A DNA stretch of 63,271 bases, the filler included, from Hyphochytrium catenoides (Eukaryota > Protista > Hyphochytriomycota), in NCBI GenBank assembly GCA_900088475.1. It is 6 parts of 6 records of this genome, joined end to end, with 100 filler letters (N's around TTAATTAATTAA, not from the genome) between each part and the next. Parts side by side here need not be neighbours in the genome. Positions count along the whole stretch, not along the records: positions 1 to 28,015 come from FLMG01002487.1; 5 more parts are not named here. One strand, 5' to 3'. Positions 2,063 to 25,457 of the stretch are shown here, one piece after another. The position numbers were made by a program, and so were the translations under genes. Position 1 is the stretch's first letter; each line of letters begins with the position of its first letter. The notes beneath the pieces are model-generated. The model saw only the letters and a list, made by a program, of their open reading frames with translations, did no database searches and was not told where the DNA came from.

Positions 2063-3320
2063 ATGAGTGCCCTACTGTCAGCGAACCAGCGGCTAGCACT
2101 AGAGAAGACGTCTGAGAACAATTCAACCTTCAAAAAGCTAAAACTCGTCCGAGAACGTAAGTTAAGCGGATAGTTCTCACTTGTGGTGGCCCCCTTTGAC
2201 CACTTATCTGCAGACGCAGACGCCTCATTCGTCGCCCTACTTGCCGAAGGCTTAGCAACAAACTGCTACCTTGAGCACATTGACCTGAGCCTGAACAAAC
2301 TGGAGGATGACGGAGCTATCGCTTTGGCGAGAGCACTAGAGGTTGCAGGCTGCAAGCTTCCATTGGAAGCCCTCATCCTCTGCCTCAACGGAATCAGAGT
2401 TCAAGGTGAGAAGGGATACAAAGAATCTTCGGTCCCTCTTCCTTATCCTTCGTGCTTCTAGGCATGCGGTCTCTGGCCACACCTCTCTGTAAATTCCTAG
2501 GCATGAAGAAAATTATTCTGGATGGCAATACCATCGGAGATGAAGGGCTCATGGCTCTGCTAAGTGGGGCCAATAATGGCGCTTTGTCTAATGATAGAAG
2601 CTTTCCCCTTTTGTCCACTCTGTCTTTGGCGAACTGCGCCATTACTGAGGTCGGAGGACGTATCATCGTAAGGCACTTTATGGAAACTTCCAGTCTCGAA
2701 TCTCTTAATCTGGCGGGCAATAGGCTAAGAGATGGTGGTGCTGGTCTGATGGCGTTCCTTCTCCTCCATTGTGAGAATCTGAAAAAGCTGGACCTTTCAG
2801 ATAATCGAATAACTGACGATGGGTGCGGTCACCTCGCCGCCGCCTTGAGCCAAAATCCACCGTTGCAGGTTTGACAAAATGTCATAGCTCTCAAGAACTA
2901 TCCTTACCCTAACCCTATCCGTCTGCTTTAGATTCTTAGACTCGCCAGAAACGAAATCACAGATGCAAGTTGTCCGATACTGAGGCATGCAATTTTGTGG
3001 GGCAACCGGTCTCTTCAAAAGCTGTACATAGAACATAACTCCATTAGCAAAGGAGGAGTTACGAAGCTGGTGTCCCTTGTGGGCTCGAAGAAGAACATAC
3101 CCCTAAACTACGTCAAAGCGACCATCTCAAAGACACGCAAGGTCTTCGCAATGGTGGAGCGTGACGTCAAGACCCCATATGAGGTTGGGCTGTACATCAA
3201 ACAGGGCACTGAGAGATTGTCCACCTTTTTAAATGAGCGGTGAACGACCTTCCCACCCTAATGCACTATGGTACATAGAGCACCGCCAAAGCTCTCAAAC
3301 CGACCTCTCACGTGGCCTGA
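2063..3320 (+). CDS. Ribonuclease-inhibitor/NLRC3-type leucine-rich repeat protein (spliced)
   Basis: ATG 2063 (MSALLSANQRL...) splices (GT 2157 / AG 2213) in frame into ORFs with ~28-aa LRRs: LEHIDLSLNKLEDDGAIALARAL, LESLNLAGNRLRDGGAGLMA, LKKLDLSDNRITDDGCGHLAAAL, LQKLYIEHNSISKGG. The 3' end is either TGA 3243 or a last exon 3279-3320 (branch-like CTAAT upstream). Confidence 0.8.
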
Positions 3321-8737: not shown

Positions 8738-10985
8738 ATGGCGTCTGTTCAACCTGCGAAGGGTGAGTTTGAGGAGCCAAGGGCGAGGAAAACTTTGGTG
8801 TGGTGGGAGAGTACGAAGTAGAGCCGGGTTTGAAGAGGTTACGCTGTGCCTTTCCTCCTAACCTTCGTTCATTTTCGCTCCCGCTCTGTCTCGTTCAGCC
8901 TTTCTGGAGTTCTCCAACTATGCAAGATCGAGGTACCATGCCGCCGAGTTTGTCGCTAAGACTCTCTCTGGTATTGGCTACGAGCGCCTGTACGAGCATG
9001 ATGACTGGTCCAAGAAGCTCAAGCAAGGTGGCAAGTACTACGTGGTCCGAAACCAGTCCAGTATTGTGAGTGCTATTGCCTTGTAAAGTCGGGTGGTGCT
9101 GCGGTGGTTATTGATCCCTTCTATTCTTCTTGGCAGATTGGTTTTGCCCTAGGTGGCAAGTGGCAGAAGGGCAATGGCTTCAACATTATCGGTGCGCACA
9201 CAGACAGTCCTTGCCTAAAGGTGAAACCGGTATCAAAGCTTACTAAGGCAGGCTTCCTTCAGCTCGGTTTAGAGACTTACGGGTACGCTCCTTACTTAGC
9301 TAGTGCTTGGGAATCTCTGGCCAATTAGCTGGTGTTTACCGAATCTTTTGCTTAGAGGTGGCATCTGGCACACATGGTTCGACCGCGACCTAACGGTAGC
9401 TGGCCGGGTGCTGGTCAAGGAGAGTGGCAAGTATAAGTCACGCCTGGTCCACATCGGTCGCCCCGTCTGCCGTATTCCGAGCGTTGCTATCCACTTGAAC
9501 CGTGAGGTGAATGAGAAGGGCCTACAAATCAACAAGGAGACGCATCTTCGGGCCATCCTGGCCACGGGTAAGCTCTTGAGCAGGACAATTTGACTGTGTC
9601 TACTCCACTCCATAGTCACGCTAGAATCTTCGACTTTTCTTGCCCTCTGTGACATTTGGCTAACTAGACTACCTCATAGTCGCCAAGGCGCAGTTGGAGG
9701 GGAACACCGAGAAGGCTGAGACGAACCACCATCCCGTCCTTTTGGAGGCCATAGCAGAAGAGATTGGCTGCAAGGCTGATGATATCACAAGCTTTGACCT
9801 CTGTCTCGTGGATCACACGGTAAGCAAAAAAGAAGTGACATAGCTAGCACATTTTGGTGTGCCTTCATACAGAGAGTTAATCCAAACCTCTACGGAAGAA
9901 ACCAAAGGACGGTAGTGTGGTGGATGTTACCCTGCTAACAAGAGAGAGAATAAAGTGAGAAGGAAGGCATTAGAGAGACAAGCTGACTGGGGTGAAAGCG
10001 ATCTCTGTAACGACCTACCCTGTATAAATTCCGCTCTCGTAGCCCTCCCTGCTTGGTGGTATCAAGAATGAGTTCATCTTTGCTCCGCACCTTGATAACC
10101 TGTGCATGAGCTGGTGCTCTATGGAGGCTTTGAAAAGGGCGTCGGATAGTGGTAAGCCACAGAGGCTGAATAGTCAATCTTGGTGATATCAATGTATTGG
10201 CTTACACGTTTCTTATATGTGGCCGTCTATTTCAGCGTCTCTGGCGGATGAGCCCGGAGTGCGATGCATCGCTCTATTCGATCACGAAGAAGTGGGCTCA
10301 ACCTCTATGATGGGTGCAGACAGCAATTTCCTACGTGAGGTTCTGGTACGGGTCAACGGATCTGACCTTGTCGGCGTTTCCGTTAGTAAGAGTCTACTGG
10401 TAAGGTTCTTGGGAGATTTTGCTTGCCACATCAACCTCCTTCCTGCGCTTTCTAAAATTGATGTCGCTAACCGTTGTGGATTGTATTAGGTTTCTGCTGA
10501 CATGGCACATGCCCTGCACCCTAACTACCCTGAGAAGCATGAGGTATGAGAGTTTCTAACGCTGACCCGAAATCTTGTTCGTCGTGAGTCACTCAAGGCT
10601 ATCCGCACCATGTCACCCTTCTGCCTTGTAGGAGAACCACCAGCCTGCATGTGGCAAGGGCATCGTCATCAAGTGGAACACGAACCAGCGCTATGCCACC
10701 ACTCAAGAATCCTCTTTAGCGATCACCGAGCTTGCCAAGGCGCATAACATTCCTTATCAGCAGTTTTGTGTCAGGCAGGACATGGGGTGCGGCTCCACAA
10801 TCGGACCCATGCTGTCTGCCAACCTTGGCATGAAGACAGTAGACGTCGGAGCTCCTCAGCTGGCCATGCACAGCATGAGGGAGATGATGGCAGCGGATGA
10901 TATTGGCCACTCTGTCGATATTCTGGAGGTCTTCTTGAAGGAGTACTCAGCTCTCAACCTCAACATTGATGTAGAGTCTTTCTAA
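8738..10985 (+). CDS. DNPEP: Aspartyl aminopeptidase (peptidase M18), spliced
   Basis: MASVQPAK|AFLEF start; motifs [63 protein letters not shown]; stop TAA 10983-10985. Confidence 0.95.
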
Positions 10986-11226: not shown

Positions 11227-14200
11227 TCAGTAAAACTGAAGAATCTTGACAGGAGGTAGTATAGAGGAGTCCCAGCGGAGGAAAAACGTTTCCCACAGCC
11301 TGAGATTCTTAGAGCTTGCGCTGGGATAGACCGTCTCTGAGGTCTCTTGGTACAGAGCGTTGATAAATCCTTTCTTATGCTCCTCCACATAGCACCAGAT
11401 GGACAACGTTCTTTTAGGGACTTCATTCTGCATCCTGGTGAAGCGGTGGAGAACGGGAAGAGGAAGCATCGATAAAGCTTGCCATGAGAAGAGTACCAGG
11501 TCACGATGCACGAGCCAATGAGTCAATGAAGTACCGCAGAAAATAGCATTGGTGATCTTCTGCGGTGATAGCCCTCATAGAACTACTCCATACCTCTCAA
11601 AGTTGGAGTCAAACAAGAAGTTTCCAAATCTGCAAGCGAAGCAAAGATCCGCGAGGCAGACCAACAGACGCTCATTAAACTCAAACATTTGGGGATACTG
11701 CCTCATAATCTGCCAAACTACATCAATCCAAAGAGGAAAGACGGGACTTTGCTGGTCATTGGGCTCCCTCCCATGACCGCAGCGCTTCGCAAACTTGGAG
11801 GAAGGCAACGAGGACAGTGTGAGTCAACTCATGGAGGAGACACGAAGAGCTTCATTTTAAGATCGCAGGAATGCATCCATTTTCTTTTCTCAGGTCGTTA
11901 GGGGCCAAGGGAAGAAGAGGGATAGGGCAAGCAAGGCAATCAAGGGACTGTATAGCTATGCAATGGTGTTCTACAGCCACTTGAAAGGAGAGGAGGAGGA
12001 TTGCTGTGTTCTTACCATGTGTCCAAAGCCACACCACTCCTTTTCAATGAGACACTAGCACCGAAGGATGTTAGCTGGAGTATTGGAAGGCGCTTCTTCG
12101 AACACCTCTTTTGCGAACTTCCACTAGCCTCTATTCAAACAAATGGACCTCACCTGGAAGCCTTCAAATGTTCGATAGAAGGGATCAAGAAGTAGTTCCG
12201 CCGTAGCCACAATCTGAGTAGTTCGGTCCCATCCGTCACTACAGTGAACCAGACAAGAAGCGCCTTCTTGGTCCACTAGGCGGACGATCTGAATCGCTGC
12301 GGATAGAATCTAGCAGTGCGGATAAGCTTGTGTCGATGTCACGTTTTGGACATAGTGAAGAAGGACAGAATGCCTGAGGTTGTGAAGCGAGAAGGAAATA
12401 GTCTGGAAGGGGAAGGAGAATGTTCGATGTGATCCACGCACCAAACTGGCAGGAAAGAAAGACGACATTCACTCAAGACGATAGGGAAGGCCCTCGCCAA
12501 TGGAAGAGCTCACTGGAGCCAATGGGACGTACCTTTTGCACATGCCGCAGCCACCCGGTCGCATCCACCTTTGTCATGAAGTCCCCATTATCGCTCGTGG
12601 GGTCAGCCAACAGGCAAAGCTGACGGAAGCTCTCACGTAAGGCATGAATGTTACCTTCAGACGTATGAGGTTATTACGAAGTCACACTTCTTTGACCCGT
12701 GCCACTGCTCTATTCTCCCTTAAAAGTTCAGAGCTTACCGATATTCATATACAGCTTTTCTCCGCCTGGGTAGAACTCCATCCGCTCTGAACCCTTGCCT
12801 AACGGTGGCCGAGGTTAGCCCAGATAGCTTCGAAAAGAAATTAGGCCAGCTTACCAAGAGCTCTGTTGCCCATTCCAGCGGTACGGCTTCGGGCATCAAT
12901 TATGTAAAACTTCTTCGATTTGACTCCTGCATTGAGAGTCACCACGACAGAAGCGACAATATTCAAAGGGTTAGATGCAAGGACGTCAATCCTCTTGCGT
13001 GCCACCACTATCTTAGGAAGTCACCTGAGGTAGAAGAGAGAAGAAGAATAAGTCGCTCATCTTCCTTGCACCGATTTTTGCGCATTCCAGTTAGAGGTTG
13101 GCTGCTCCGAGAGATCGTGGCCTGTTATGGTCCAACAGACATCGCAGGCAAATGTATCAAAAGCGCTATAAGCCCCTAAGTTTCCTTTTACGTTGGAATG
13201 GATATGAAGCTAGAGGGGAAAGGGGATATATACGAGGGATAGACAAAGGAATTTACCTTGGTCCTGGAATGTTTCCACACAGTGGCTGGTATCCGGCTCT
13301 TGCTTCTAAAGGCACTGACATATTCTAGCTCGCCATCGCTTATTTGACTCGGGATGACGACAAAGGCTGGGTAGCTCTTGCAGACAGAATAGCGCTGATT
13401 GACGAACCTACAGCACAAGACCGGGATACAAAAGGGGAGAAAAGGGGAGGGTCAAGAGGTAAACGAAAGGAATGCTATGGTTCGCTATCTCTAGCCTAGC
13501 CACTTGTGGGTTGGAACAAAATTTTACCGTTTAAAGGAGTCGAACACATTCCTGCTCAGCTGCTCATGCAGATTAAACCGACATAGCCCCAGAAACTCTC
13601 TAAAAATAAATTAACGCTTACCTCCATTCGTCAGAGACAAGCCCCAGTCTTCCATAATCTTTGACCGGATCGTATACCGTCCACCATTGTTTTTGGTCAT
13701 TACCACTGCCTCGCCATCCTGAAAAAGCGAATGCCACAACAGCAAGCGTCAGGCAAGCAAAGGACTAGCGGGCAATGGAAGGGTCTAACAAAGAGATTGC
13801 CAAGCTTCCAGTACACCACAGATAGACGTAGATGCTGCGCACCACGGTGCCCGCAGTTTCAGAACTGGGCACGGAAGTCTTATGGGTATAAAAAAACACT
13901 GCTATCAACGGTTATATCATCACCTGTTGTTCTATTTAATGCGTGCGCATAGTGACTGAAAGCAAAGGCCTGACGAAAGTCGCCCGAGAAGACTAAGCTG
14001 GAGATCATTAGCAGGAACTGCTGCAGCTCTGCCGTGTTTCTGACAAGAAACCTTTGAACCTAGGAAGAAAAAGTCAAAATAATGTTGTCGAACCCAAAGA
14101 CATTCCCCCATCAAAATGGGAAGATGAAAAGCCTTACCATTACAACTTTGGTATAAAGTGTGAAACGGATGTCGTCCTGCTGTCGGGGTTCAGCCGATAG

Positions 14201-17200
14201 ATCCAGGATGTTGCCCGCCACCGAGGAAGTTGTGAGCTTTTGAATCAGAGTGAGAGGGACGCACCAGTCCGCTACATATAGAAAAGTAAGAGAGATCGCT
14301 TCCAGAGCAACTAAGCCTTCGAGCACTTACCTGTTTTCCTATCGTCGACGAAAATGAATCTGTAGTTACTTACGAAGATCATTCCGGACAAGCTTTCGTC
14401 ATAGACAAGCTGTCGCTGCAGGTCCAGGCGGGAGTCCTCCAGTACAGCAGGCAGAGTCGTGATGATGCTTTCTCCCCGCAACAGCTCTATCTGATGTTGG
14501 AGCTTATTGTTGGAAGGAGAGAGTTCGACGGTAGAAACGTCAGCTTGGCCGTAACCTAGTCGAGGGAACAGCACAGAGAAAGACACGTCACAGATGTGTA
14601 GCTCTTTCGGTGGCTCTTTTGGGCCGGCCCACTACTTCAGCATCTATTTCCCTTGTCATAGAGGTTGTCATGTTTGCCTTCAGTCTGATGCAAACGCATT
14701 TTTTCCGTGTTCTCTTTCATACCTGAACGGAATGCTATGTATATAGGTCGCGGAAGTCTTTGAATATGGCTCACGAAGTCCATAGTGCCCACATTGAGAA
14801 GAATGACTCCATTAACGGCATAGACGATATCACCCTTTCGAACCTAAGAACAAGCTCTGTCACTAGTATGTATCTTCCACCGTAAGCTGCGGCTTCTTTT
14901 GCTTTACCTGCCCACTGCTCTCAGCCTGACTGCCCTGCGTCAAGCCGCTCACATATAATCCGTGATCAGCGGAGCGATTCAGCACTAACCCCAGGGGCCC
15001 TGGACATAGCGATTAGCCTTGCTAAGCCATTAGAAGAGGGTACTTCACTCGGCGAATGTGCGCATCGATAAAATTGTAGGGGGTACCAGGGATGAACCTT
15101 TACCAATGGCCCGACAGAGAAATGTACCAGTAAAAACCGTACCATGAAAGAACTTGACGACATTGACTCCAGGTATAGAGGAGAGAAGGTATGGATCCTG
15201 TATGTAAAGTGCTTGCTTGATTATTCCGTCCACACCCATAAGCTCGCTACTGTTGATGTCATTCAGCAGATCAAGGCAGGCCTGAGCATTATCTATGGAC
15301 ATTCGAGGAGAAGTTAATGAGAATCGTGAGACACCGAGGAAAGCTTCACGCCTTGAGAGCCATGTGAGGTGAGCTCCATTTGCGTTTGAGCGGTGATATC
15401 GAAGCAATGCCTAACCTAAACTTACCTGCAGCTAAGACCTGATCACGCTTAGACAAGAGGTTGGAGACACATAGATAGGGAAGCAGCTCCGGTATGGAAC
15501 TGTTAGACTAGACGAACTCGGTCAGAAAGCTCAAGTAGCAGCGATTGTGCCCCGGCAAACCTTAGAAGCATTTAGTACCTGCGAGGGGAGCTGCCTGAGA
15601 AAGGCGTCCCACACCAGCAAGAGATCTTCTAGGCCGAACTGGGTGATGAATAGACCTCTCAGCCACGGTTTAAGGTAGACTTGTGCCTCCACTTTTAGCG
15701 CCTGAAGATGCTGATACATCAATGGGGCTACATCCGGGAGAAGGTTGTCATGGATGTGGTGACAGAGGTGTGGCAACACCGCTTGGTCATGGCCTAGGAG
15801 GTAGGTGTGAATGGTGGTTTCGCTTCCACCGCGGAATGCATACAGAGAGAGAGTGAATGGGAGAGCAAGGCTGTAGGATGAATTGTTGAATGAGCAGGTT
15901 GGCATACTAGAGACACCGTGAAGGTAAGACGAGCAAACGGCCGGGTTACCTTCTTCGAGATACAAAGGCTGAAGAGAAGTCATGAGAGAAGAGAATATTA
16001 GGAAAGAGTCAGGCTCCACGACGACAGACGGGCTCTCCATCTGGCCTAGCTTATTCTTATGCAGTAGAGGACTGCGTACACCGCTCAAAGGTGCGCTGAT
16101 GAGGCCCATAGACTGCCTCCGAACAATGTGCTGAGGGTCTTGCTCTAAAGTCTCCAAGCCTCGGCCTGTTTCCTCTATTTGAGCAAGCTCCGAAGCAAGC
16201 ACTCCATAGTCATTCTCCTGTGGGAGTAAAGGATTGATGTCAGCTTAACAAGTTTCTACCCTCACAAGGTTGGCTACGCACCAAAACCTTGATAATAACT
16301 GCCAGTATTTGACGCATCTCATCTTGAAATTTTAGCTCCTGGGTGATAGACAGCAGGAGGTTGGTTGCTGGGCAGCATGGATCAAAGAGGGTGGTTCAAA
16401 GAGAGTAGGAGAAAGAAGCAAGCAACAGTAAAGGCCTGAAAACATTCGCAAGCAGCAAGGTCAAGGTCATATCCAGCGAGGCGAGACTAACCTTGTTTTC
16501 CGAAAGCCATGCCAACAGCACACGCTTCAACACTTCAGCCTTGGCTTCTAGCACTACAAACTCATAAGCCTCGTCTTCCTCAAGCTGCAGGGACTTCTCT
16601 ATCTCGGCTATTATCTCTTCAGAGTCCTAGACCGAAGGAGCTAGCGTCAATGGTGGAACACTAGGACCGAGGCCAAGCTCCCCTGGTTTAGTATGAAAAG
16701 GCGGACGAAAGCTATTTACTCTTTGAGGCTTGAAGTGGTCCTCGGTTATGATTAAGGGAGACAGGCCCGATGGCGCGGAGCGCACACAGCCTTCTGCTTC
16801 CGCTGTTGCACTCTGGACGTCGGTCTTCTCGTCGTGCAGGGTATCGGGGTCCGAGGGAGGTATTATTCTTGCTGGTTCTGAGCGTCTCCGGCTTTGTTTG
16901 CTACCTGCAGAAAGATGCAAGATGGGAAGCAATTTTCTCCTATCCCGTGACACGGAATCTTCCTCTAACCTCCGACGCCTCCTTGGTTGTGCGGGTGGCC
17001 ACTGAAGTATTCCTTTCGCATATCGTCCAGCTGGTCCGCCCATCGATCGACATGCTGGCTGTCGCCGAGTATGCCTAAGTGATGCATCCATTGTATTGAC
17101 CTGCGGGGTTCACTCATAAGCGTGTTTACGCAAATTATTGTTGTCCGTGAGTCGCACCTGTACTGTGACAGAACAGCATCAGCCAGCCGTTCCGACTCAA

Positions 17201-17246
17201 AGCTCTTTCGTATAGATCTCCTCCCTGGCTCTCGCAGTGGTTCCAT
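11227..17246 (-). CDS. TBC (Rab-GAP-like)-PDZ-PH/GRAM-myotubularin phosphatase fusion protein, spliced
   Basis: TBC: YLKPWLRGLFITQFGLEDLLLVWDAF...LPYLCVSNLLSKRDQVL. PDZ: FHGPLGLVL...GLYVSGLTQGSQAESSGQVRKGDIVYAVNG. GRAM: LLRGESII...GMIFVSNYRFIF. Myotubularin: YSVCKSYPAFVVIP, FRSKSRIP, VHCSDGWDRT (12220-12249), SPVFPLWIDVVWQIMRQYPQMFEFNE, FGNFLFD. The junctions between domains splice in frame. Confidence 0.85.
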
Positions 17247-18083: not shown

Positions 18084-20198
18084 CTAGCGAGAAAAGCTCT
18101 TCAGAAGTTCCATGACATTCGCTACTTGAGTTGCTACTCTTGATACATCTGCCTGCAGCACGTGAATGGAGTTGACGCACACCACCACAATCTCCTCGAC
18201 GCCATCCTAGGCGGCATAAGTATGAAGATCGTTAGGTAAGGGTCGCCGGGTGAAATTCAAGAAAGTTCCTAACCATATCTAGATCGAGACTGGCGATAGC
18301 GTAGACGGGGCTGGCAAACGTCCTGACTGACTGGAGGTTGAATTCTAGGGGAATGAAACGTGGATAACTTCTGTTGCTCCAAGGACAAAATGCAGGCGGG
18401 CGAATGCATACCTTGGCCTCCTCCTCCATCCCTCATCTGGAGCTGGTAGACTAGGACGCTGCCGTCATACGTCCCAAGCAGGACTTCCTCCTGGCCATCC
18501 TACATAGCAACTGGTGCTTCAGTTCGAACCCTGGGTAACTACGACCAGATCTCAACTTGGGACGGAAAACTGATCTGCCTCCACGACAGAGGTCAAGAAG
18601 GCGGGTCACAGCAAAAAGAAAGCAACAGATACAACTCGATGCAAGTCCGCCTCACATGATTGATATCCGCAAGATGAGCGCACAGGATGGCGTCGTGCTT
18701 ATCAGATTCGGGCAGGATCTGAGGCTTCCCCTGATCAAAGGACAGAGCATACCCTGCACCGCACGCCGCAATCAATGTTGTGCACAGCTGCTGTCTCTTT
18801 TTCTTCTCAATTGGCTCGGATGTCAAGTCGACGTTGCAGATTCCTGTTATGGGTCCGTCCAGGATGCGGCTCAACTGTATACTGACTTCTACTGACGTGT
18901 TGGGTGTCGCAGCAACTTGGGTTGACACAACCTTGAGAGCGCTAAGTGAAGGTCGTCAAGACTTCTCTCGGAGCCGCACTGGAACAAAAAGGATAACCTA
19001 CCCGTTTTGGCACCCAATCGTTGCAAGTCTTTGATCGAAAAAGTGCCTGTAGGACAGAGCAGATTGAGAGTTGCGAACTTCCCTTGTAAGCCCTTTCTCG
19101 TTGCTGAGTGCATGTACACAGTTCTCACACCTTATCGTTAGGTAGGAGATGGAGCTCAGATTCTTTATAGTCTGAAGTTCAGGAAGTGCTCCTGCCCCAA
19201 TATCCTGAAGCCTCAGCTCACCCTTATCTCGGAGGACAGAATATACGAGGATTTGCCGGTCCTTACAACTAACTATCAGAAGCTGGTATAGCAGTTGGAA
19301 GGAAGGCGAACTGGGTCAGCTCGGAGCACAGGTAGACGCATCCATACTGCATATATTGTTGCTTGCAGCTCATACCTCTACTTTCTGTCCTTGAAGAGAA
19401 GTTTGGCAGTTTGTGATATGCATCGGCGCCGCCAATAAACTAAAGTCCTGGAGAGCCGTAAGGTTTGAGCTGCCGGAATGTCCATGAGAAGAATTAATCT
19501 TCACCATTAATTACCTGTTGATCACTAACGACGTCCTGAAGCGACCTGGTCGGTGGAGTACGCAGTCCACAGATACGCAGCCGCCAGCATCTGTCGTTTG
19601 GCGCGTCTCTCTCGGTGTCTCCAGAACTATGTCCTCCCGCTAATTCCGTTCCACTCCGATCCTGGCTGACAGTGTAGCCTATCGCAAGAAGTAGTTCCGG
19701 TTGGCGCACGTCACTCGGTCCTATCTAGAGGAGTTAGAGTTAGGGTCTTACTTAATAAGCGATTGTGAATTGCGAAAGCTTGACCTTGCATGGCTGGAAA
19801 GCATGGAATGATATTATCTCTCCATCACCTTCTTCCTCGTCATTATTGAAGACTGCCAGAGGTTCACACCTATGTGCAACGATACATAAGAACAAGAGGG
19901 AGTCAGCATATAACCTATGGTAATGATGAGACAGCGTAGAGAGCCTTTCGCCTTCTGCGATGTAGGGTTGGAGAACCTGAAGGCCTCGTCTTCTTCGTCG
20001 TAGGTTAGATGATTCACTCCCTTTGTATGTGCAATCAAAGCCCTGCATAGGGAGTGGTAAGTATGAGGATGGGTCAGATGAGCCTTCCAGACTGCCTCAC
20101 CCTTTTTTGCCCGTTGAGGAAACGCAGCTTGAGAAGCAGTAGATATTGTGGCGGTGAGCCGTCTGGATATAGGAGATCTCTTGATAGTCTGCCAGCAT
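18084..20198 (-). CDS. KPTN: Kaptin-like protein (KICSTOR subunit), spliced
   Basis: N-terminus MLADYQEISYIQTAHRHNIYCFS; GEIISFHAF; ILPESDKHDAILCAHLADINH; DGQEEVLLGTYDG; C-terminus RTFASPVYAIASLDLDM|DGVEEIVVVCVNSIHVLQ...SFSR* matches my recollection of the kaptin motif order. An alternative in-frame ATG lies at 20225. Confidence 0.75.
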
Positions 20199-20835
20199 TG
20201 TCTCCGAAACCTCTCTCAGGAACATGGAAGAAAGCGGCTGTGCTCCGGCGCCGCTTGCAGTCAAAAGTTGCCTCAGCCACACACTCGCGCGTCGAAGGAG
20301 TGCTGTCCCTTGCTTAACTAGTCTAGGTCAGACGATCTCTTAGGTATCGTGCTGACACTGGTCAGCTCCGATCACCGTTGAACATCATGGGCAGCTCCCA
20401 TTGTTGTCTTCCTTCCCGGTTGGCTCGCGTCGTCATCGACCCGATATAGCAGGATGCAGGGGCTGCACCTCCTGTCTCTGAAGCAAGGAGAACAGTGGCA
20501 GTCCTCCAAACTCTTCACGTCCCGGTTGGCCTCCCAGCACAATCGCACCCTCTTCTGGACGGGACTGGAGGCGTCAGAAGTCAGAAACCATCAAAGATGT
20601 GGTCGAAGAAACCCAGTGCATCCAAGAGGCGCTAACCGTTAGTAGAAGGAGCAGATCTTCGCGTTGCACTGAGAGTCAGAATCTCTTGTCTCATCAGGCT
20701 CTGGATACTTCTATTGGATTCATAAGGATCATGCTGCTGCTTCTCTGCTGGACCAGAAGTACCTTGTAACCTATCGTGTAGCACCTCGGAGCGTCATAGA
20801 GAGCTGCAGGAAGCAGCTCACAGTCAAGGCACCTT

Positions 20836-22514
20836 ATGGAAAGTGGCATTGCTGCAGCGGCTGAAGTAGACGTCCACGCTTCAAGGAGTGGCGCAGGAAG
20901 TAAAGATGACTTGAGGTCCAGTCCTCCATCGACATCAGTATCGCGGATATCTAGAAGAGCTGCTAGGGGTCTGCAGGGTTCCGGCTTTGCTTCATACTTC
21001 AAATACATTTCCCTTGCTCTTGCAGATCCTTGGACGCCAAAGAATCAGGATGGGTAAGACTACTCGCCAGGACACGGGTACTAAGACTAACGCCGGCATG
21101 GGAAGTTCTAACGGCATTGACTACGTAGATATGTAAACCTTTCCGTGGCTGCGAATGTGCTATTAGCACAAGAAGTCCGTGACAAGCTAAGCCAGGGCTT
21201 GGCAGATGTGCCTGCCTCCGCGTCCTCGTATGGCCCTTTGCAGGGGCTTCAGAGCTTGCGTGAACAGGCGAGCTTGTTCATGAACAGCACATTCATGGCT
21301 GGTGTGGATGTACGTCCAGAAGAGCTGCTTATCTCATGCGGCACCACTGCTACCCTAGACCTGCTCTATTTCAGTATCTGTGAGGAGGTAGGCCATGGTT
21401 TATATTCAGTCAGCTGGCCTTACCTCTGAGTCGTTTGGTCCTTCCTGTCTCAGGGTGAGGCTGTGCTGATTCCAACACCATGTTATGTAGCCTTCGAGAG
21501 GGACCTCACGTTGAAAGCAACCTGCTCCTGCATCCATGTGCACCCATCGGGAGAGGTGATCACTTTAGAGGACATTGAGGTATCATTGTATGCTGGCTCT
21601 TTGTTTAACCTACACCACACCGAAGCTAAAGAGCCCTTCCTACCCTACGCCTAGACCGCCTATCAGTCAGCTCAAAAGACTGGCGCAGTGATCAAGAGTC
21701 TCCTGCTCACCAACCCTAATAATCCGAACGGAAGCATTCTGAAGCGCGAAGAGCTCAAGAAGTTGATCGTCTGGGCCCTGACACGTCGCATCCACGTGGT
21801 CTCGGACGAGATCTACGCGGCGTCCATATTTGATGAAAGATCTGATAACCTCTTCGTTAGTGCGGGGCAACTGGCAGTGGAGATAAAGAAGGAGAACATC
21901 ATTGAGTCAGCAGTGGTGGATAATTACCTGCATGTGATCTATGGCCTTAGCAAGGATTTCTGCATGAACGGCTATCGCATTGGAATACTTTGGACGAGGA
22001 ACAGTTTGCTGATGAACGTTCTGGCTGCAGTGAATGCCTCTGCCCTTGTTCCAAACAACATACAGCATGCTGCTGCAGGTTGGTGCATACGTAGCTTCCC
22101 AACCTCGTTACCATGTGCTCATTGTTCCGTATCTCTTCATTCGCAGCACTCCTCGGTGATCGCGAGTGGGTAACTGCGTATCTGCGGCGCAACTTGCAGG
22201 CATTACATTCAGCCTATACTTTGTTAGGAAACACTTTAAGGCAAAGTGGGATACCATTCCAAGATACAACTGCAGGAATGTTCCTATGGTTGGATCTAAG
22301 AAGCTTGATGAAGGAAGAATCCTTCCCAGAAGAACTTGCCCTTGCAGACTCCATTGTGAAAGAATGCAAAATAGTAATGGCACCGGGCCAGGACAGCAAG
22401 CATCACATTCCTGGCTTCTTCCGAGTCTGCTTTGCAGCAGCGACACCTCAGGAGTTACAGGTTGTTGGGGAGCGTCTGAGCAGATTTGTGGGAAGAAGAC
22501 GGCTGACAGTCTGA
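20836..22514 (+). CDS. 1-aminocyclopropane-1-carboxylate synthase-like PLP aminotransferase (class I/II), spliced
   Basis: YVNLSVAAN, VLIPTPCY, LLTNPNNPNG, HVVSDEIYAAS, YGLSKDFCMNGYRIG (PLP lysine), GMFLWLDLR, PGFFRVCFA. The start codon is tentative. Confidence 0.85.
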
Positions 22515-22655
22515 GAAACTACCAAGGGGATTCAGTGAAGTGAGGTGACAATATAAATAATTGGGTTACGAGTTGTAAATAAGATCTGCCGCTGAATAGT
22601 TTCGTTTGACGCCCCGCTCCGGAGAGCAACGCAGTGTAACACATGCTATTCGAAT

Positions 22656-24578
22656 CTAAAGATCTTGTCCGTGCTGTGCCATTCTTTCCAGCACACCATC
22701 TAAGTGCTCCTTGGTTACTCTCCATGGGCTCGCAAAGACAATGCGAAAGAAGTTTGGATACTGCTCTAACGGTTGAAAGCCTATCATGGCGTCACCCGCT
22801 CGCAGCATTCTTGCCTTTAGCACCGGGGCTACCTTACCCAAAGCAGCCCACTGGTCTGGAGTCGCTTTAGACCTGTCAAAGGGCCGCATAGAGGGCGGAA
22901 CGTACCAGAAGCACACGTTAATGGAGCTTCGGGGATATGCTAGAACGAAGGTTCCATCCTTCTCTTCCCATTGCTTGACTCGATCCTCGAAGTGCTTGGC
23001 TAACTCGAATGAGAGATCCACCTGCTTGCCAATATAGTTGTCTCCATATGCTTTCCACATGCACCAGAGCTTGAAGACATCAGGCCTGCGGCCACACTGG
23101 ATGGTCTTATCTCCAATATCCCACTCTGCATAGCTCTTGTCTGGCTGGAATAAATAGCTTGCTCCAGACGCATTGCATGAGGCCAAAATGTTCAAATGGC
23201 GTGTGATAAATACACTACATTGCATGGGCGCACCCATCAACTGGTAAGGAAAGGAAAGAGCGATAACGTCAGCAATGACCCCAGAAGCGGAAACAAGAGG
23301 ATCAAGGCAGACGCTGAAGACTGACAAGACGATTGCACAAGTATGAATCAGATTGGGTTTGTCTATGCGGAACTCGAAAGAAGCACCTATACCCTTACCT
23401 TATGAGGATTCCAGGCAAAAGAATCAGCATTGTCGAGGCCTCTCACGAGGTGGCGGTGATTCGGAGAGTACAAGGAAGACCCTCCCCATGCCCCGTCCAC
23501 ATGGAACCAGAGCCCATGCTCCGCACACACTTCGCCTACAGCTTCCAGGTTGTCAAACGAGCCCAATACTGTTGTCCCAGCAGTAGCTCCCACAAAAAAA
23601 GGCCTTTTACCCTCGCGCTGCACCTGTACAAATATTTGTTAGTCACTCTTGGCTAATACACTTCATAAAAATACCACGGGAAGAGATACCTGCCCAATGA
23701 GACGCTGGAGCATCTCAACATCCATTTTGCCGTGTGCATCACTGGGAACCTTGATAAGGTTATCTGTACCTAGGCCAAGCACCATTGCCGCTTTATCGAA
23801 GGAATAATGCGCATGTTCCGATACAAAGGCCACTAGTGGAGGGCTGCCAAAAAGTCCGCGGGTACGTACTTCTGGATCAGCGCGGTAACGTGCTAGCTGC
23901 ATGCTGTACAGGTTCTGTAGGAAAACACGCGCTGCCGTTAGGGCTGCAGGGCGTCGAACGTACGTAAATAGGGCTAGAGCTCACCGATATGGAGCCACCA
24001 GGGACTAGAAGTCCGTCTGCTGCCTCGTCATAGCATCCACCTACGGTAGCTGCTACCTTGCGGATAATCTCCTTCTCCATCAAGGTAAATACTGGAGAGA
24101 CTTCGTAGGTGTGCACAGCAGTGTGTGCCGCGACAGTCAGCCACTCTGCGGCAATGCCCACTGTGTCTGCACGAGCATAAAGCTGGTTGAAGAAGAGGGG
24201 ATGTCCTGTGCGCACGGAGAGGTCAAGGGTACGCCCGCACGCCTCTAGAATACTCTCTAACTCTGCAGGGTGGTCGTTTTCAAGCAGGGATAACGACATC
24301 CCAGCCGTATCAAAAGCCTCATGTATCTGCCTCGGTGACATGAACTTTGTGACTGGCTGGGTAGCATCAGGGCTAGAGTTGACGTACTTGGCGAGCAGAT
24401 CAGAAACCCTGCGCAGAAATGTTTCCATGTGCTCTTCAGTAGGCCTGCTACAGGGTACCTGCCCATTGTGGCCATTTTGCATTCCGGTAGGGGCAGTTTG
24501 GCCATCCTTGTCAGGAGATGTTGGAGGCGAGACTACCGTCAGCCCTCGTAGGCTACCAGGGGCGATCGAAAGGTCCAT
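22656..24578 (-). CDS. Group II PLP acidic amino-acid decarboxylase (GADL1/CSAD/GAD family), spliced
   Basis: TGHPLFFNQLYA, HTYEVSPVF, PGGSIS, HYSFDKAA, ATAGTTVLGSFD, WFHVDGAWGG, DSFAWNPHK (PLP lysine), YLFQPDK, GDKTIQCGRRPDVFKLW, NFFRIV. Confidence 0.92.
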
Positions 24579-25457
24579 GACTCTCACTGATCAAAGAAGG
24601 TTGCCCGGCCTCGCTTCGAAAAACACCGTTTGCTGGTCCACGCCTGGCGAAAGATTTAATATTGAAGACGTGATCTCCTGACCCGTAGCTCAACAGCATC
24701 GACTCCTATGCAGTCCATTTGTGGCTGCACTTACTATCAGGAATGCACCTGTTCCTGTGAGAATGCTCATCGAGGCCAGACGCGAGAGGAAGAGACAAGG
24801 TGGGTAAGCAACAGTCTTCTGCTTAAGTCGAGGGTGAAGGCAGACAGGGCGATGAAGACGAGCAGACAACAAGAGGAGGCCGCAACACCTTGCCATCACA
24901 TCCCACATCGCCATACATTTGACTCCATACATTGTTCCAATCTGGGGCTCGTCAAAGCCTCTTCTCCGCCATAAATAACATTCTTCCGCGTCACCCTCCA
25001 GCACCACAGGGAAGAGGAGGAAGGGGAGCGGGCGGACATGTATGAAAAACACACAAACTGCGCTCCCAGGATATTCGCGCTCACATTCATTATAGAGATA
25101 TTTAGCAAACTCTCTTAATATGTATATGGGTCTAGGCATTATCCACCTTCTGCTCACACTAACTCTCCTAGGAATAGCGTATTATGGGGAGTAAGAAGAC
25201 TAACAAACACTCACAAGAGCAGAGTGGTGGCTTGCTCTGCTCTAGACGTACTTGTACTTGTACTTGGTGACCGACAGACAGACAAAAAGACGAGAAGGTC
25301 AATCACGGTTGAAATTTGTACTCGTAGTTCTACATCTTGTACCACAAGTCTAGAGTTCTTCTAAGGCCTTAGTTCTACATCAAATGAGAGAAAATGGGAA
25401 CATAATAACTGTGGTAACATCAAATGAGAAGGCCTCATTATATTATCTATAATCTAA

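Follow-up and report, generated by a model that had tools for sequence, protein, structure and literature searches.

Can a single gene of Hyphochytrium catenoides encode a TBC fold of the Rab GTPase-activating protein (Rab-GAP) type, a PDZ domain, a GRAM domain plus a phosphatase of the myotubularin type in one polypeptide, and, if so, which of these parts would still act as enzymes? The question was raised by an earlier note, made from the sequence alone, on a stretch of 63,271 nucleotides of this genome (hereafter the window; six parts of the assembly GCA_900088475.1 joined end to end), and concerns a gene on the minus strand of that window. Here, we describe this gene as a 22-exon member of a TBC-PDZ-PH-GRAM-myotubularin family that is shared with oomycetes. 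Its product is probably an active phosphatase of phosphatidylinositol 3-phosphate (PI3P) or phosphatidylinositol 3,5-bisphosphate (PI(3,5)P2), and the gene itself a diverged duplicate within the family, with a TBC domain that would act as a pseudo-GAP module.

One gene with four domains

The gene model runs on the minus strand from an ATG at 17246 to the stop codon TGA at 11229-11227, and its coding sequence of 3429 nt (1142 codons) contains no internal stop when the junctions are read on that strand with script-checked coordinates. All 21 introns are of the GT-AG type (checked by script in the same way) with lengths of 56-223 nt, and each would bring a stop into the frame were it retained. 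Genes interrupted by short GT-AG introns are found in this genome (61 Mb in 4759 records, GC ~49%; the gene lies on contig C3659), and the published assembly comprises 4758 scaffolds and the mitochondrial genome, its genes averaging 3.64 introns (PMC5795050). Downstream, a Peptidase_M18 gene converges on the gene and ends near 10985, which fixes the 3' end. Additionally, 14 exons match the profile of the oomycete family described below with an expectation value (E) < 0.05, their matches rising strictly along the profile from position 150 to 1093, a collinearity that, judged on sequence, is far beyond chance; identity to the oomycete relatives is ~25-54% per exon.

The phosphatase is the best-kept domain. 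Pfam matches to Myotub-related (PF06602) fall into five pieces that span 13451 to 11578 (-), exon pieces reaching 57.5, 77.4 and 86.9 bits where the cut-off is 25, and 114 of the 169 aligned positions that are conserved in at least 90% of the family are identical in the window copy. The match of the family profile to MTMR2 has E 9e-137, and the C-x5-R loop is identical to the loop that is invariant in the family, so that the phosphatase looks active. As a myotubularin, the enzyme would be expected to remove the 3-phosphate from PI3P or PI(3,5)P2. At least eight myotubularin loci were observed in the 61-Mb genome (on C2239, C791, C3251, C3207, C1057, C1039, C396 and C3659).

Immediately ahead of the phosphatase lie exons 10-12, which align, in order, with the GRAM region of the family; Pfam gave no GRAM match on the window exons. 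The structure model of the family GRAM region (best mean predicted local distance difference test, pLDDT, 71; the other four models 43-49) had the PH-GRAM domains of MTMR2 and MTMR6 as first matches, followed by other PH domains. Upstream of it come exons 8 and 9, whose alignment to the PDZ region of the family is likewise in order, exon 9 matching profile positions 459-512 with E 3e-10. The Pfam PDZ domain was undetected in the single-exon pieces scanned; it is above the cut-off in the relative P0172 (31.6 bits) and weaker in other relatives, and in a search of all solved-structure sequences positions 416-517 of the family profile match PDZ chains only. An AlphaFold model of the PDZ region, for which six relatives together with exons 8 and 9 of the window gene served as input, has PDZ topology (mean pLDDT 72), and the Foldseek matches listed for it are all PDZ domains with probability 1.00. 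At the N-terminal end of the protein, the C-terminal half of the TBC domain is matched by Pfam RabGAP-TBC in stop-free pieces (15534-16244 (-), 35.7 bits, cut-off 25.2) and by positions 150-299 of the family profile (E 6e-18); among solved-structure sequences, the family profile also matches Gyp1 and other TBC domains. All four domains are thus confirmed for the family, and for the window gene by alignment, which for its TBC domain is solid in the C-terminal half.

The earlier note had read one continuous frame through GT-AG splicing from TBC over PDZ and GRAM into the phosphatase, and the 22-exon frame bears this out, with the named junctions where they had been placed (TBC tail to exon 7, exon 7 to the PDZ loop exon, and intron 14722-14556 to the GRAM exon). 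Equally, the PDZ domain is spread over three exons and hidden from a view of single open reading frames, as had been proposed, and the myotubularin looks catalytically intact. The claim of a single four-domain protein finds support both in the frame check and in collinear oomycete orthologues, each encoded by a single gene and in one case by an uninterrupted reading frame.

A family shared with oomycetes and a second copy in the genome

A HMMER scan of the 237-residue TBC exon of the window gene against 1.84 billion cluster representatives returned distant TBC proteins only and no close orthologue; the top match of the scan, P0001, was rejected as a low-complexity artefact. The family became accessible through P0023 of Lagenidium giganteum, a protein with TBC and Myotub-related domains that aligns in order to the TBC, PDZ and phosphatase exons of the window gene, and the family searches were seeded first with this protein and later with an alignment of 31 sequences. 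PF00566 and PF06602 occur together in more than 40 oomycete proteins, from Phytophthora, Nothophytophthora, Peronospora, Bremia, Plasmopara, Hyaloperonospora and Peronosclerospora as well as Pythium, Globisporangium, Lagenidium, Aphanomyces, Saprolegnia, Achlya and Thraustotheca, and the layout is present in public proteomes of all major oomycete groups. Among the 67 members of an ESM Atlas cluster, Myotub-related was found in all and RabGAP-TBC in 79%. The names under which such proteins are stored, for example 'MTMR2', 'SET-binding factor 2' or 'mannosyltransferase', say little or mislead; others are filed as 'phosphatidylinositol-3-phosphatase'.

The same four-domain order, collinear with the window exons, was seen in P0186 (Aphanomyces stellatus), P0151 (Pythium oligandrum), P0023 and P0196 (Saprolegnia parasitica), and the 1142 codons of the window gene compare with 957-1250 amino acids for most oomycete proteins. 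Since P0172 is encoded by one uninterrupted reading frame of 1106 codons on a Logan contig, the fusion is not an artefact of gene modelling. The orthologues in the intron-poor oomycetes are single genes that without exception keep both catalytic fingers of the TBC domain, whereas the window copy has 21 introns and neither finger.

Several related architectures were observed alongside the family. P0106 (569 amino acids, E 6e-177 to the family profile) is a TBC-PDZ protein encoded at L010:1-1236 (-) of an oomycete Logan contig, head to head with a full four-domain gene at L010:1501-4821 (+), a pair that looks like a partial inverted duplication. P0189, from the JGI metagenome 3300020184 (L015:301-3948 (+)), has the order PDZ-GRAM-myotubularin and no TBC signal in its first ~300 residues, so the PDZ-GRAM-phosphatase unit also occurs without a recognisable TBC domain. 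As oomycete counterparts of the window copy, P0189 and P0190 were rejected, having only the phosphatase in common with it; P0189 also shares the PDZ domain with the second Hyphochytrium gene introduced below. Six Phytophthora models (P0160, P0161, P0162, P0170, P0174 and P0185), named mannosyltransferase, join TBC-myotubularin to a glycosyltransferase (PF00534, PF13439); these are probably merged neighbour genes, the misnaming having spread to some shorter entries.

With regard to its TBC domain, the family stands closest by best hits to TBC1D5. The best non-family matches of the family profile are stand-alone TBC proteins, of which those with a source name are all called TBC1D5, and the top matches in the scan of the window TBC exon resemble TBC1D5-like sequences (E 1e-20 to 1e-135). 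By best hits, TBC1D5 is thus the TBC type nearest in sequence to the family and to the window TBC exon alike, and no TBC1D5 chain is among the solved-structure matches of the family profile. TBC1D5 is a retromer-bound GAP of Rab7 (PMC6176412). Unlike the fusion, TBC1D5 itself is without PDZ, GRAM or phosphatase domains. A stand-alone TBC1D5-like gene was also found in the H. catenoides genome (G000:C2429:12281-12871 (+), the sole match there to the oyster TBC1D5-like protein), and the fusions are therefore not the only TBC1D5-type genes of this genome.

A whole-genome search with the Aphanomyces member revealed a second four-domain gene, G000:C3251 at ~18800-24750 (-) (L009:1800-7731), with the same TBC-PDZ-PH-GRAM-myotubularin order as the window gene. 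In the Pfam scans, TBC and myotubularin had come together on C3659 only, the TBC domain of the C3251 gene surfacing only by protein search. This copy retains the IxxDxxR and YxQ motifs of the TBC domain as well as the C-x5-R loop and outscores the window copy against the family in every domain, and is likely, as far as sequence comparison goes, the true orthologue of the oomycete genes. At least three intron positions (profile positions ~120, 891 and 942) are common to both paralogues, as would be expected if an already fused and intron-bearing gene had been duplicated.

Among animal proteins, the active myotubularins MTM1, MTMR1 and MTMR2 combine PH-GRAM and phosphatase with the same catalytic loop as the window gene, and we know of no TBC or PDZ domain ahead of PH-GRAM in them. 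DENN is a guanine nucleotide exchange factor domain for Rab GTPases. MTMR5 and MTMR13 (SBF1/SBF2) resemble the window gene in placing a Rab-regulatory module N-terminal to PH-GRAM-myotubularin; there, however, a DENN module is joined to a dead phosphatase, whereas in the window gene a dead-looking regulatory module of the TBC type is joined to an active-looking phosphatase. DENN gave no Pfam match on the window pieces, and the intact loop is also unlike the inactive phosphatase of the SBF type. Neither TBC nor PDZ appears in a 2010 survey of myotubularin architectures, the oomycete phosphatome paper leaves the fusion unmentioned, and among open-access papers and bioRxiv we found no paper describing a TBC-myotubularin architecture. 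The layout, for which the earlier note knew of no characterised example, is therefore catalogued in sequence databases, with more than 40 public oomycete proteins and a second gene in the same genome, and undescribed as far as our literature search reached. Since it is already visible in public proteomes, the present finding is a refinement and not a new kind of protein; what is new here is the TBC1D5-nearest type of the TBC domain, the better-conserved second copy on C3251 and the finger substitutions in the window copy.

The catalytic fingers of the TBC domain

Rab-GAPs of the TBC type work by a dual-finger mechanism that is inoperable without its arginine and glutamine. The finger positions of the window copy were placed by alignment to the family profile and by a MAFFT alignment that also included the C3251 paralogue and five oomycete sequences. 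Asp and Arg of the arginine finger and Tyr and Gln of the glutamine finger are invariant in 31 of 31 oomycete family members; the window copy has Ser for Asp and Leu for Arg at the first site and Phe-x-Asp at the second. Exons 1, 3 and 4 match the family profile weakly, in order; the spacing to the next conserved helix agrees with the family at the Ser/Leu site alone, and the glutamine-finger register is anchored by the intron just before the YxQ exon (between exons 3 and 4), which the C3251 paralogue has in common. We adopt this register on the grounds of exon order, helix spacing and shared intron position. The window TBC domain thus appears to have lost both catalytic residues, and because these family-invariant fingers are absent, we class the window gene as a diverged paralogue and not as a typical member. 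Rab-GAP function, as implied by the 'TBC Rab-GAP fold' of the earlier note, becomes doubtful for this copy with both fingers missing at the homologous positions, and Rab binding or scaffolding is the more likely role.

Several points weigh against this picture. Taken alone, exons 3 and 4 align weakly at the finger sites (E ~1), and alignment of exons 3 and 1 to the family alignment by hhalign gave uninformative probabilities of <1%, the exons being too short. Exon 2 contains an I-x-x-D-x-x-K string, 18 residues upstream of the homologous arginine-finger site, and the gene model is at its least certain in exons 1-2 and at the start codon. Furthermore, the splicing of the 22 exons is predicted, the fold models of PDZ and GRAM are those of oomycete relatives, to which the split window exons are tied by alignment, and the likeness to TBC1D5 is an assignment by best hits.

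It could therefore be asked whether the window TBC domain is still an active Rab-GAP, either through true exons missed in the model of exons 1-4 or through non-canonical residues that catalyse. Such an outcome, for which the weakly aligning N-terminal half, the string in exon 2 and the uncertainty of exons 1-2 would speak, seems unlikely to us: up to 20.5 kb on the minus strand, neither a better N-terminal TBC half nor an exon with canonical motifs was found, the helix spacing and the shared intron favour the register with the substituted fingers, and Pfam gave no match to the N-terminal half in the exon 1-3 pieces scanned, just as the whole-genome Pfam scan flagged the C-terminal half alone on C3659. 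Were the window gene a duplicate of the C3251 gene that is decaying or without function, this would account for its greater divergence in every domain and for the lack of a close relative of its TBC exon among the cluster representatives searched. Yet all 22 exons are open with canonical splice sites, and the catalytic loop and 114 of the 169 aligned conserved phosphatase positions have been kept; such preservation would hardly be expected without selection, and we consider decay quite improbable.

There is, finally, the question of two adjacent genes, one encoding TBC-PDZ and the other GRAM-myotubularin. Retention of intron 9 would stop the frame 28 codons downstream, and the existence of P0106 demonstrates that a TBC-PDZ gene is known from one oomycete contig; nevertheless, the gap between PDZ and GRAM is a canonical, in-phase intron of 167 nt (14722-14556), the stretch from the stop upstream of exon 10 to the GRAM core contains no in-frame ATG, and the orthologues hold all four domains in one gene, which together make a division into two genes very improbable. 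We thus return to the diverged duplicate with an active-looking phosphatase, in which a finger-less TBC domain would bind Rab or serve as a scaffold and, together with PDZ and PH-GRAM, may position the phosphatase on a membrane. Cargo recognition by the PDZ domain and an endosomal site of action, both part of the earlier proposal, are what we infer for such a protein.

Feature coordinates, neighbouring genes and implications

The features of the gene are collected in Table 1.

Table 1. Coordinates, in window positions, of the TBC-PDZ-PH-GRAM-myotubularin gene, its exons (each from high to low), domains and catalytic sites.
Feature	Position	Strand	Remarks
Whole gene model	11227..17246	(-)	22 exons, GT-AG introns, open frame, exons collinear with family profile
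Exons 1-5	17246-16970, 16904-16720, 16626-16492, 16338-16288, 16217-15579	(-)	
Exons 6-10	15507-15426, 15292-15143, 14999-14908, 14843-14723, 14555-14331	(-)	
Exons 11-15	14271-14138, 14059-13924, 13718-13622, 13407-13257, 13121-13025	(-)	
Exons 16-20	12926-12855, 12798-12739, 12654-12533, 12309-12154, 12054-12016	(-)	
Exons 21-22	11793-11594, 11434-11227	(-)	
TBC domain, exons 1-7	15180..17105	(-)	C-terminal half solid, N-terminal half strongly diverged
Arginine-finger site (IxxDxxR homologue)	16582..16602	(-)	Ser for Asp, Leu for Arg
Glutamine-finger site (YxQ homologue)	16321..16329	(-)	Phe-x-Asp
PDZ domain	14724..15173	(-)	tail of exon 7, exon 8 (x-hydrophobic-Gly-hydrophobic loop) and exon 9
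PH-GRAM domain, exons 10-12	13925..14553	(-)	family profile 531-588 (E 8e-4) and 650-687 (E 0.012)
Phosphatase domain, exons 13-22	11230..13718	(-)	Pfam Myotub-related in five pieces
Catalytic C-x5-R loop	12220..12246	(-)	intact, identical to family-invariant loop, with the Asp of active members

On the side of the phosphatase, the converging neighbour is an M18 aminopeptidase at 10217-10982 (+), ~240 nt away from stop to stop. The window further holds a leucine-rich-repeat exon at 2452-2871 (+), an exon of a class I/II aminotransferase at 21688-22170 (+) and, ~5 kb from the TBC-myotubularin gene, a pyridoxal-dependent decarboxylase gene at 22659-24587 (-). A member of the same Pfam family as this decarboxylase directly flanks the Lagenidium orthologue (L014:6305-6541 (-)), and its presence beside the fusion in both genomes is either remnant microsynteny or coincidence.

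For the family as a whole, the architecture shared with oomycetes places a TBC1D5-like Rab-GAP domain, a PDZ domain and PH-GRAM ahead of a myotubularin phosphatase that is presumably active. Where GAP fingers and phosphatase loop are both intact, as in the canonical members (every oomycete copy and the C3251 gene), one polypeptide would switch off a Rab, most likely of the Rab7 type, and remove the 3-phosphate of PI3P or PI(3,5)P2 on the same membrane, and Rab inactivation may in this way be coupled to PI3P removal on endosomal membranes. It is conceivable, though rather unlikely on the evidence at hand, that the fusion could be read as a 'Rosetta stone', in which a TBC1D5-type Rab7 GAP and a myotubularin would form, in pseudofungi, one eraser of two signals, Rab7-GTP and PI3P, by which retromer and sorting nexins are kept on endosomes, the window copy being the regulatory pseudo-GAP partner of the canonical copy. 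If this were true, the pair of pseudo-GAP and canonical copy would mirror, with roles reversed, the pairs of active and dead myotubularins in animals.

The identity of endosomes is set jointly by Rab GTPases and phosphoinositides, and from the natural joining of a Rab7-GAP-like domain to a PI3P phosphatase one would predict that the two 'off' reactions are coupled. The fusion might further hint that TBC1D5 and myotubularins, which in animals are separate proteins, are functionally linked there. In H. catenoides itself, the two paralogues, one with and one without GAP fingers, offer a natural comparison of GAP and pseudo-GAP within a single genome.

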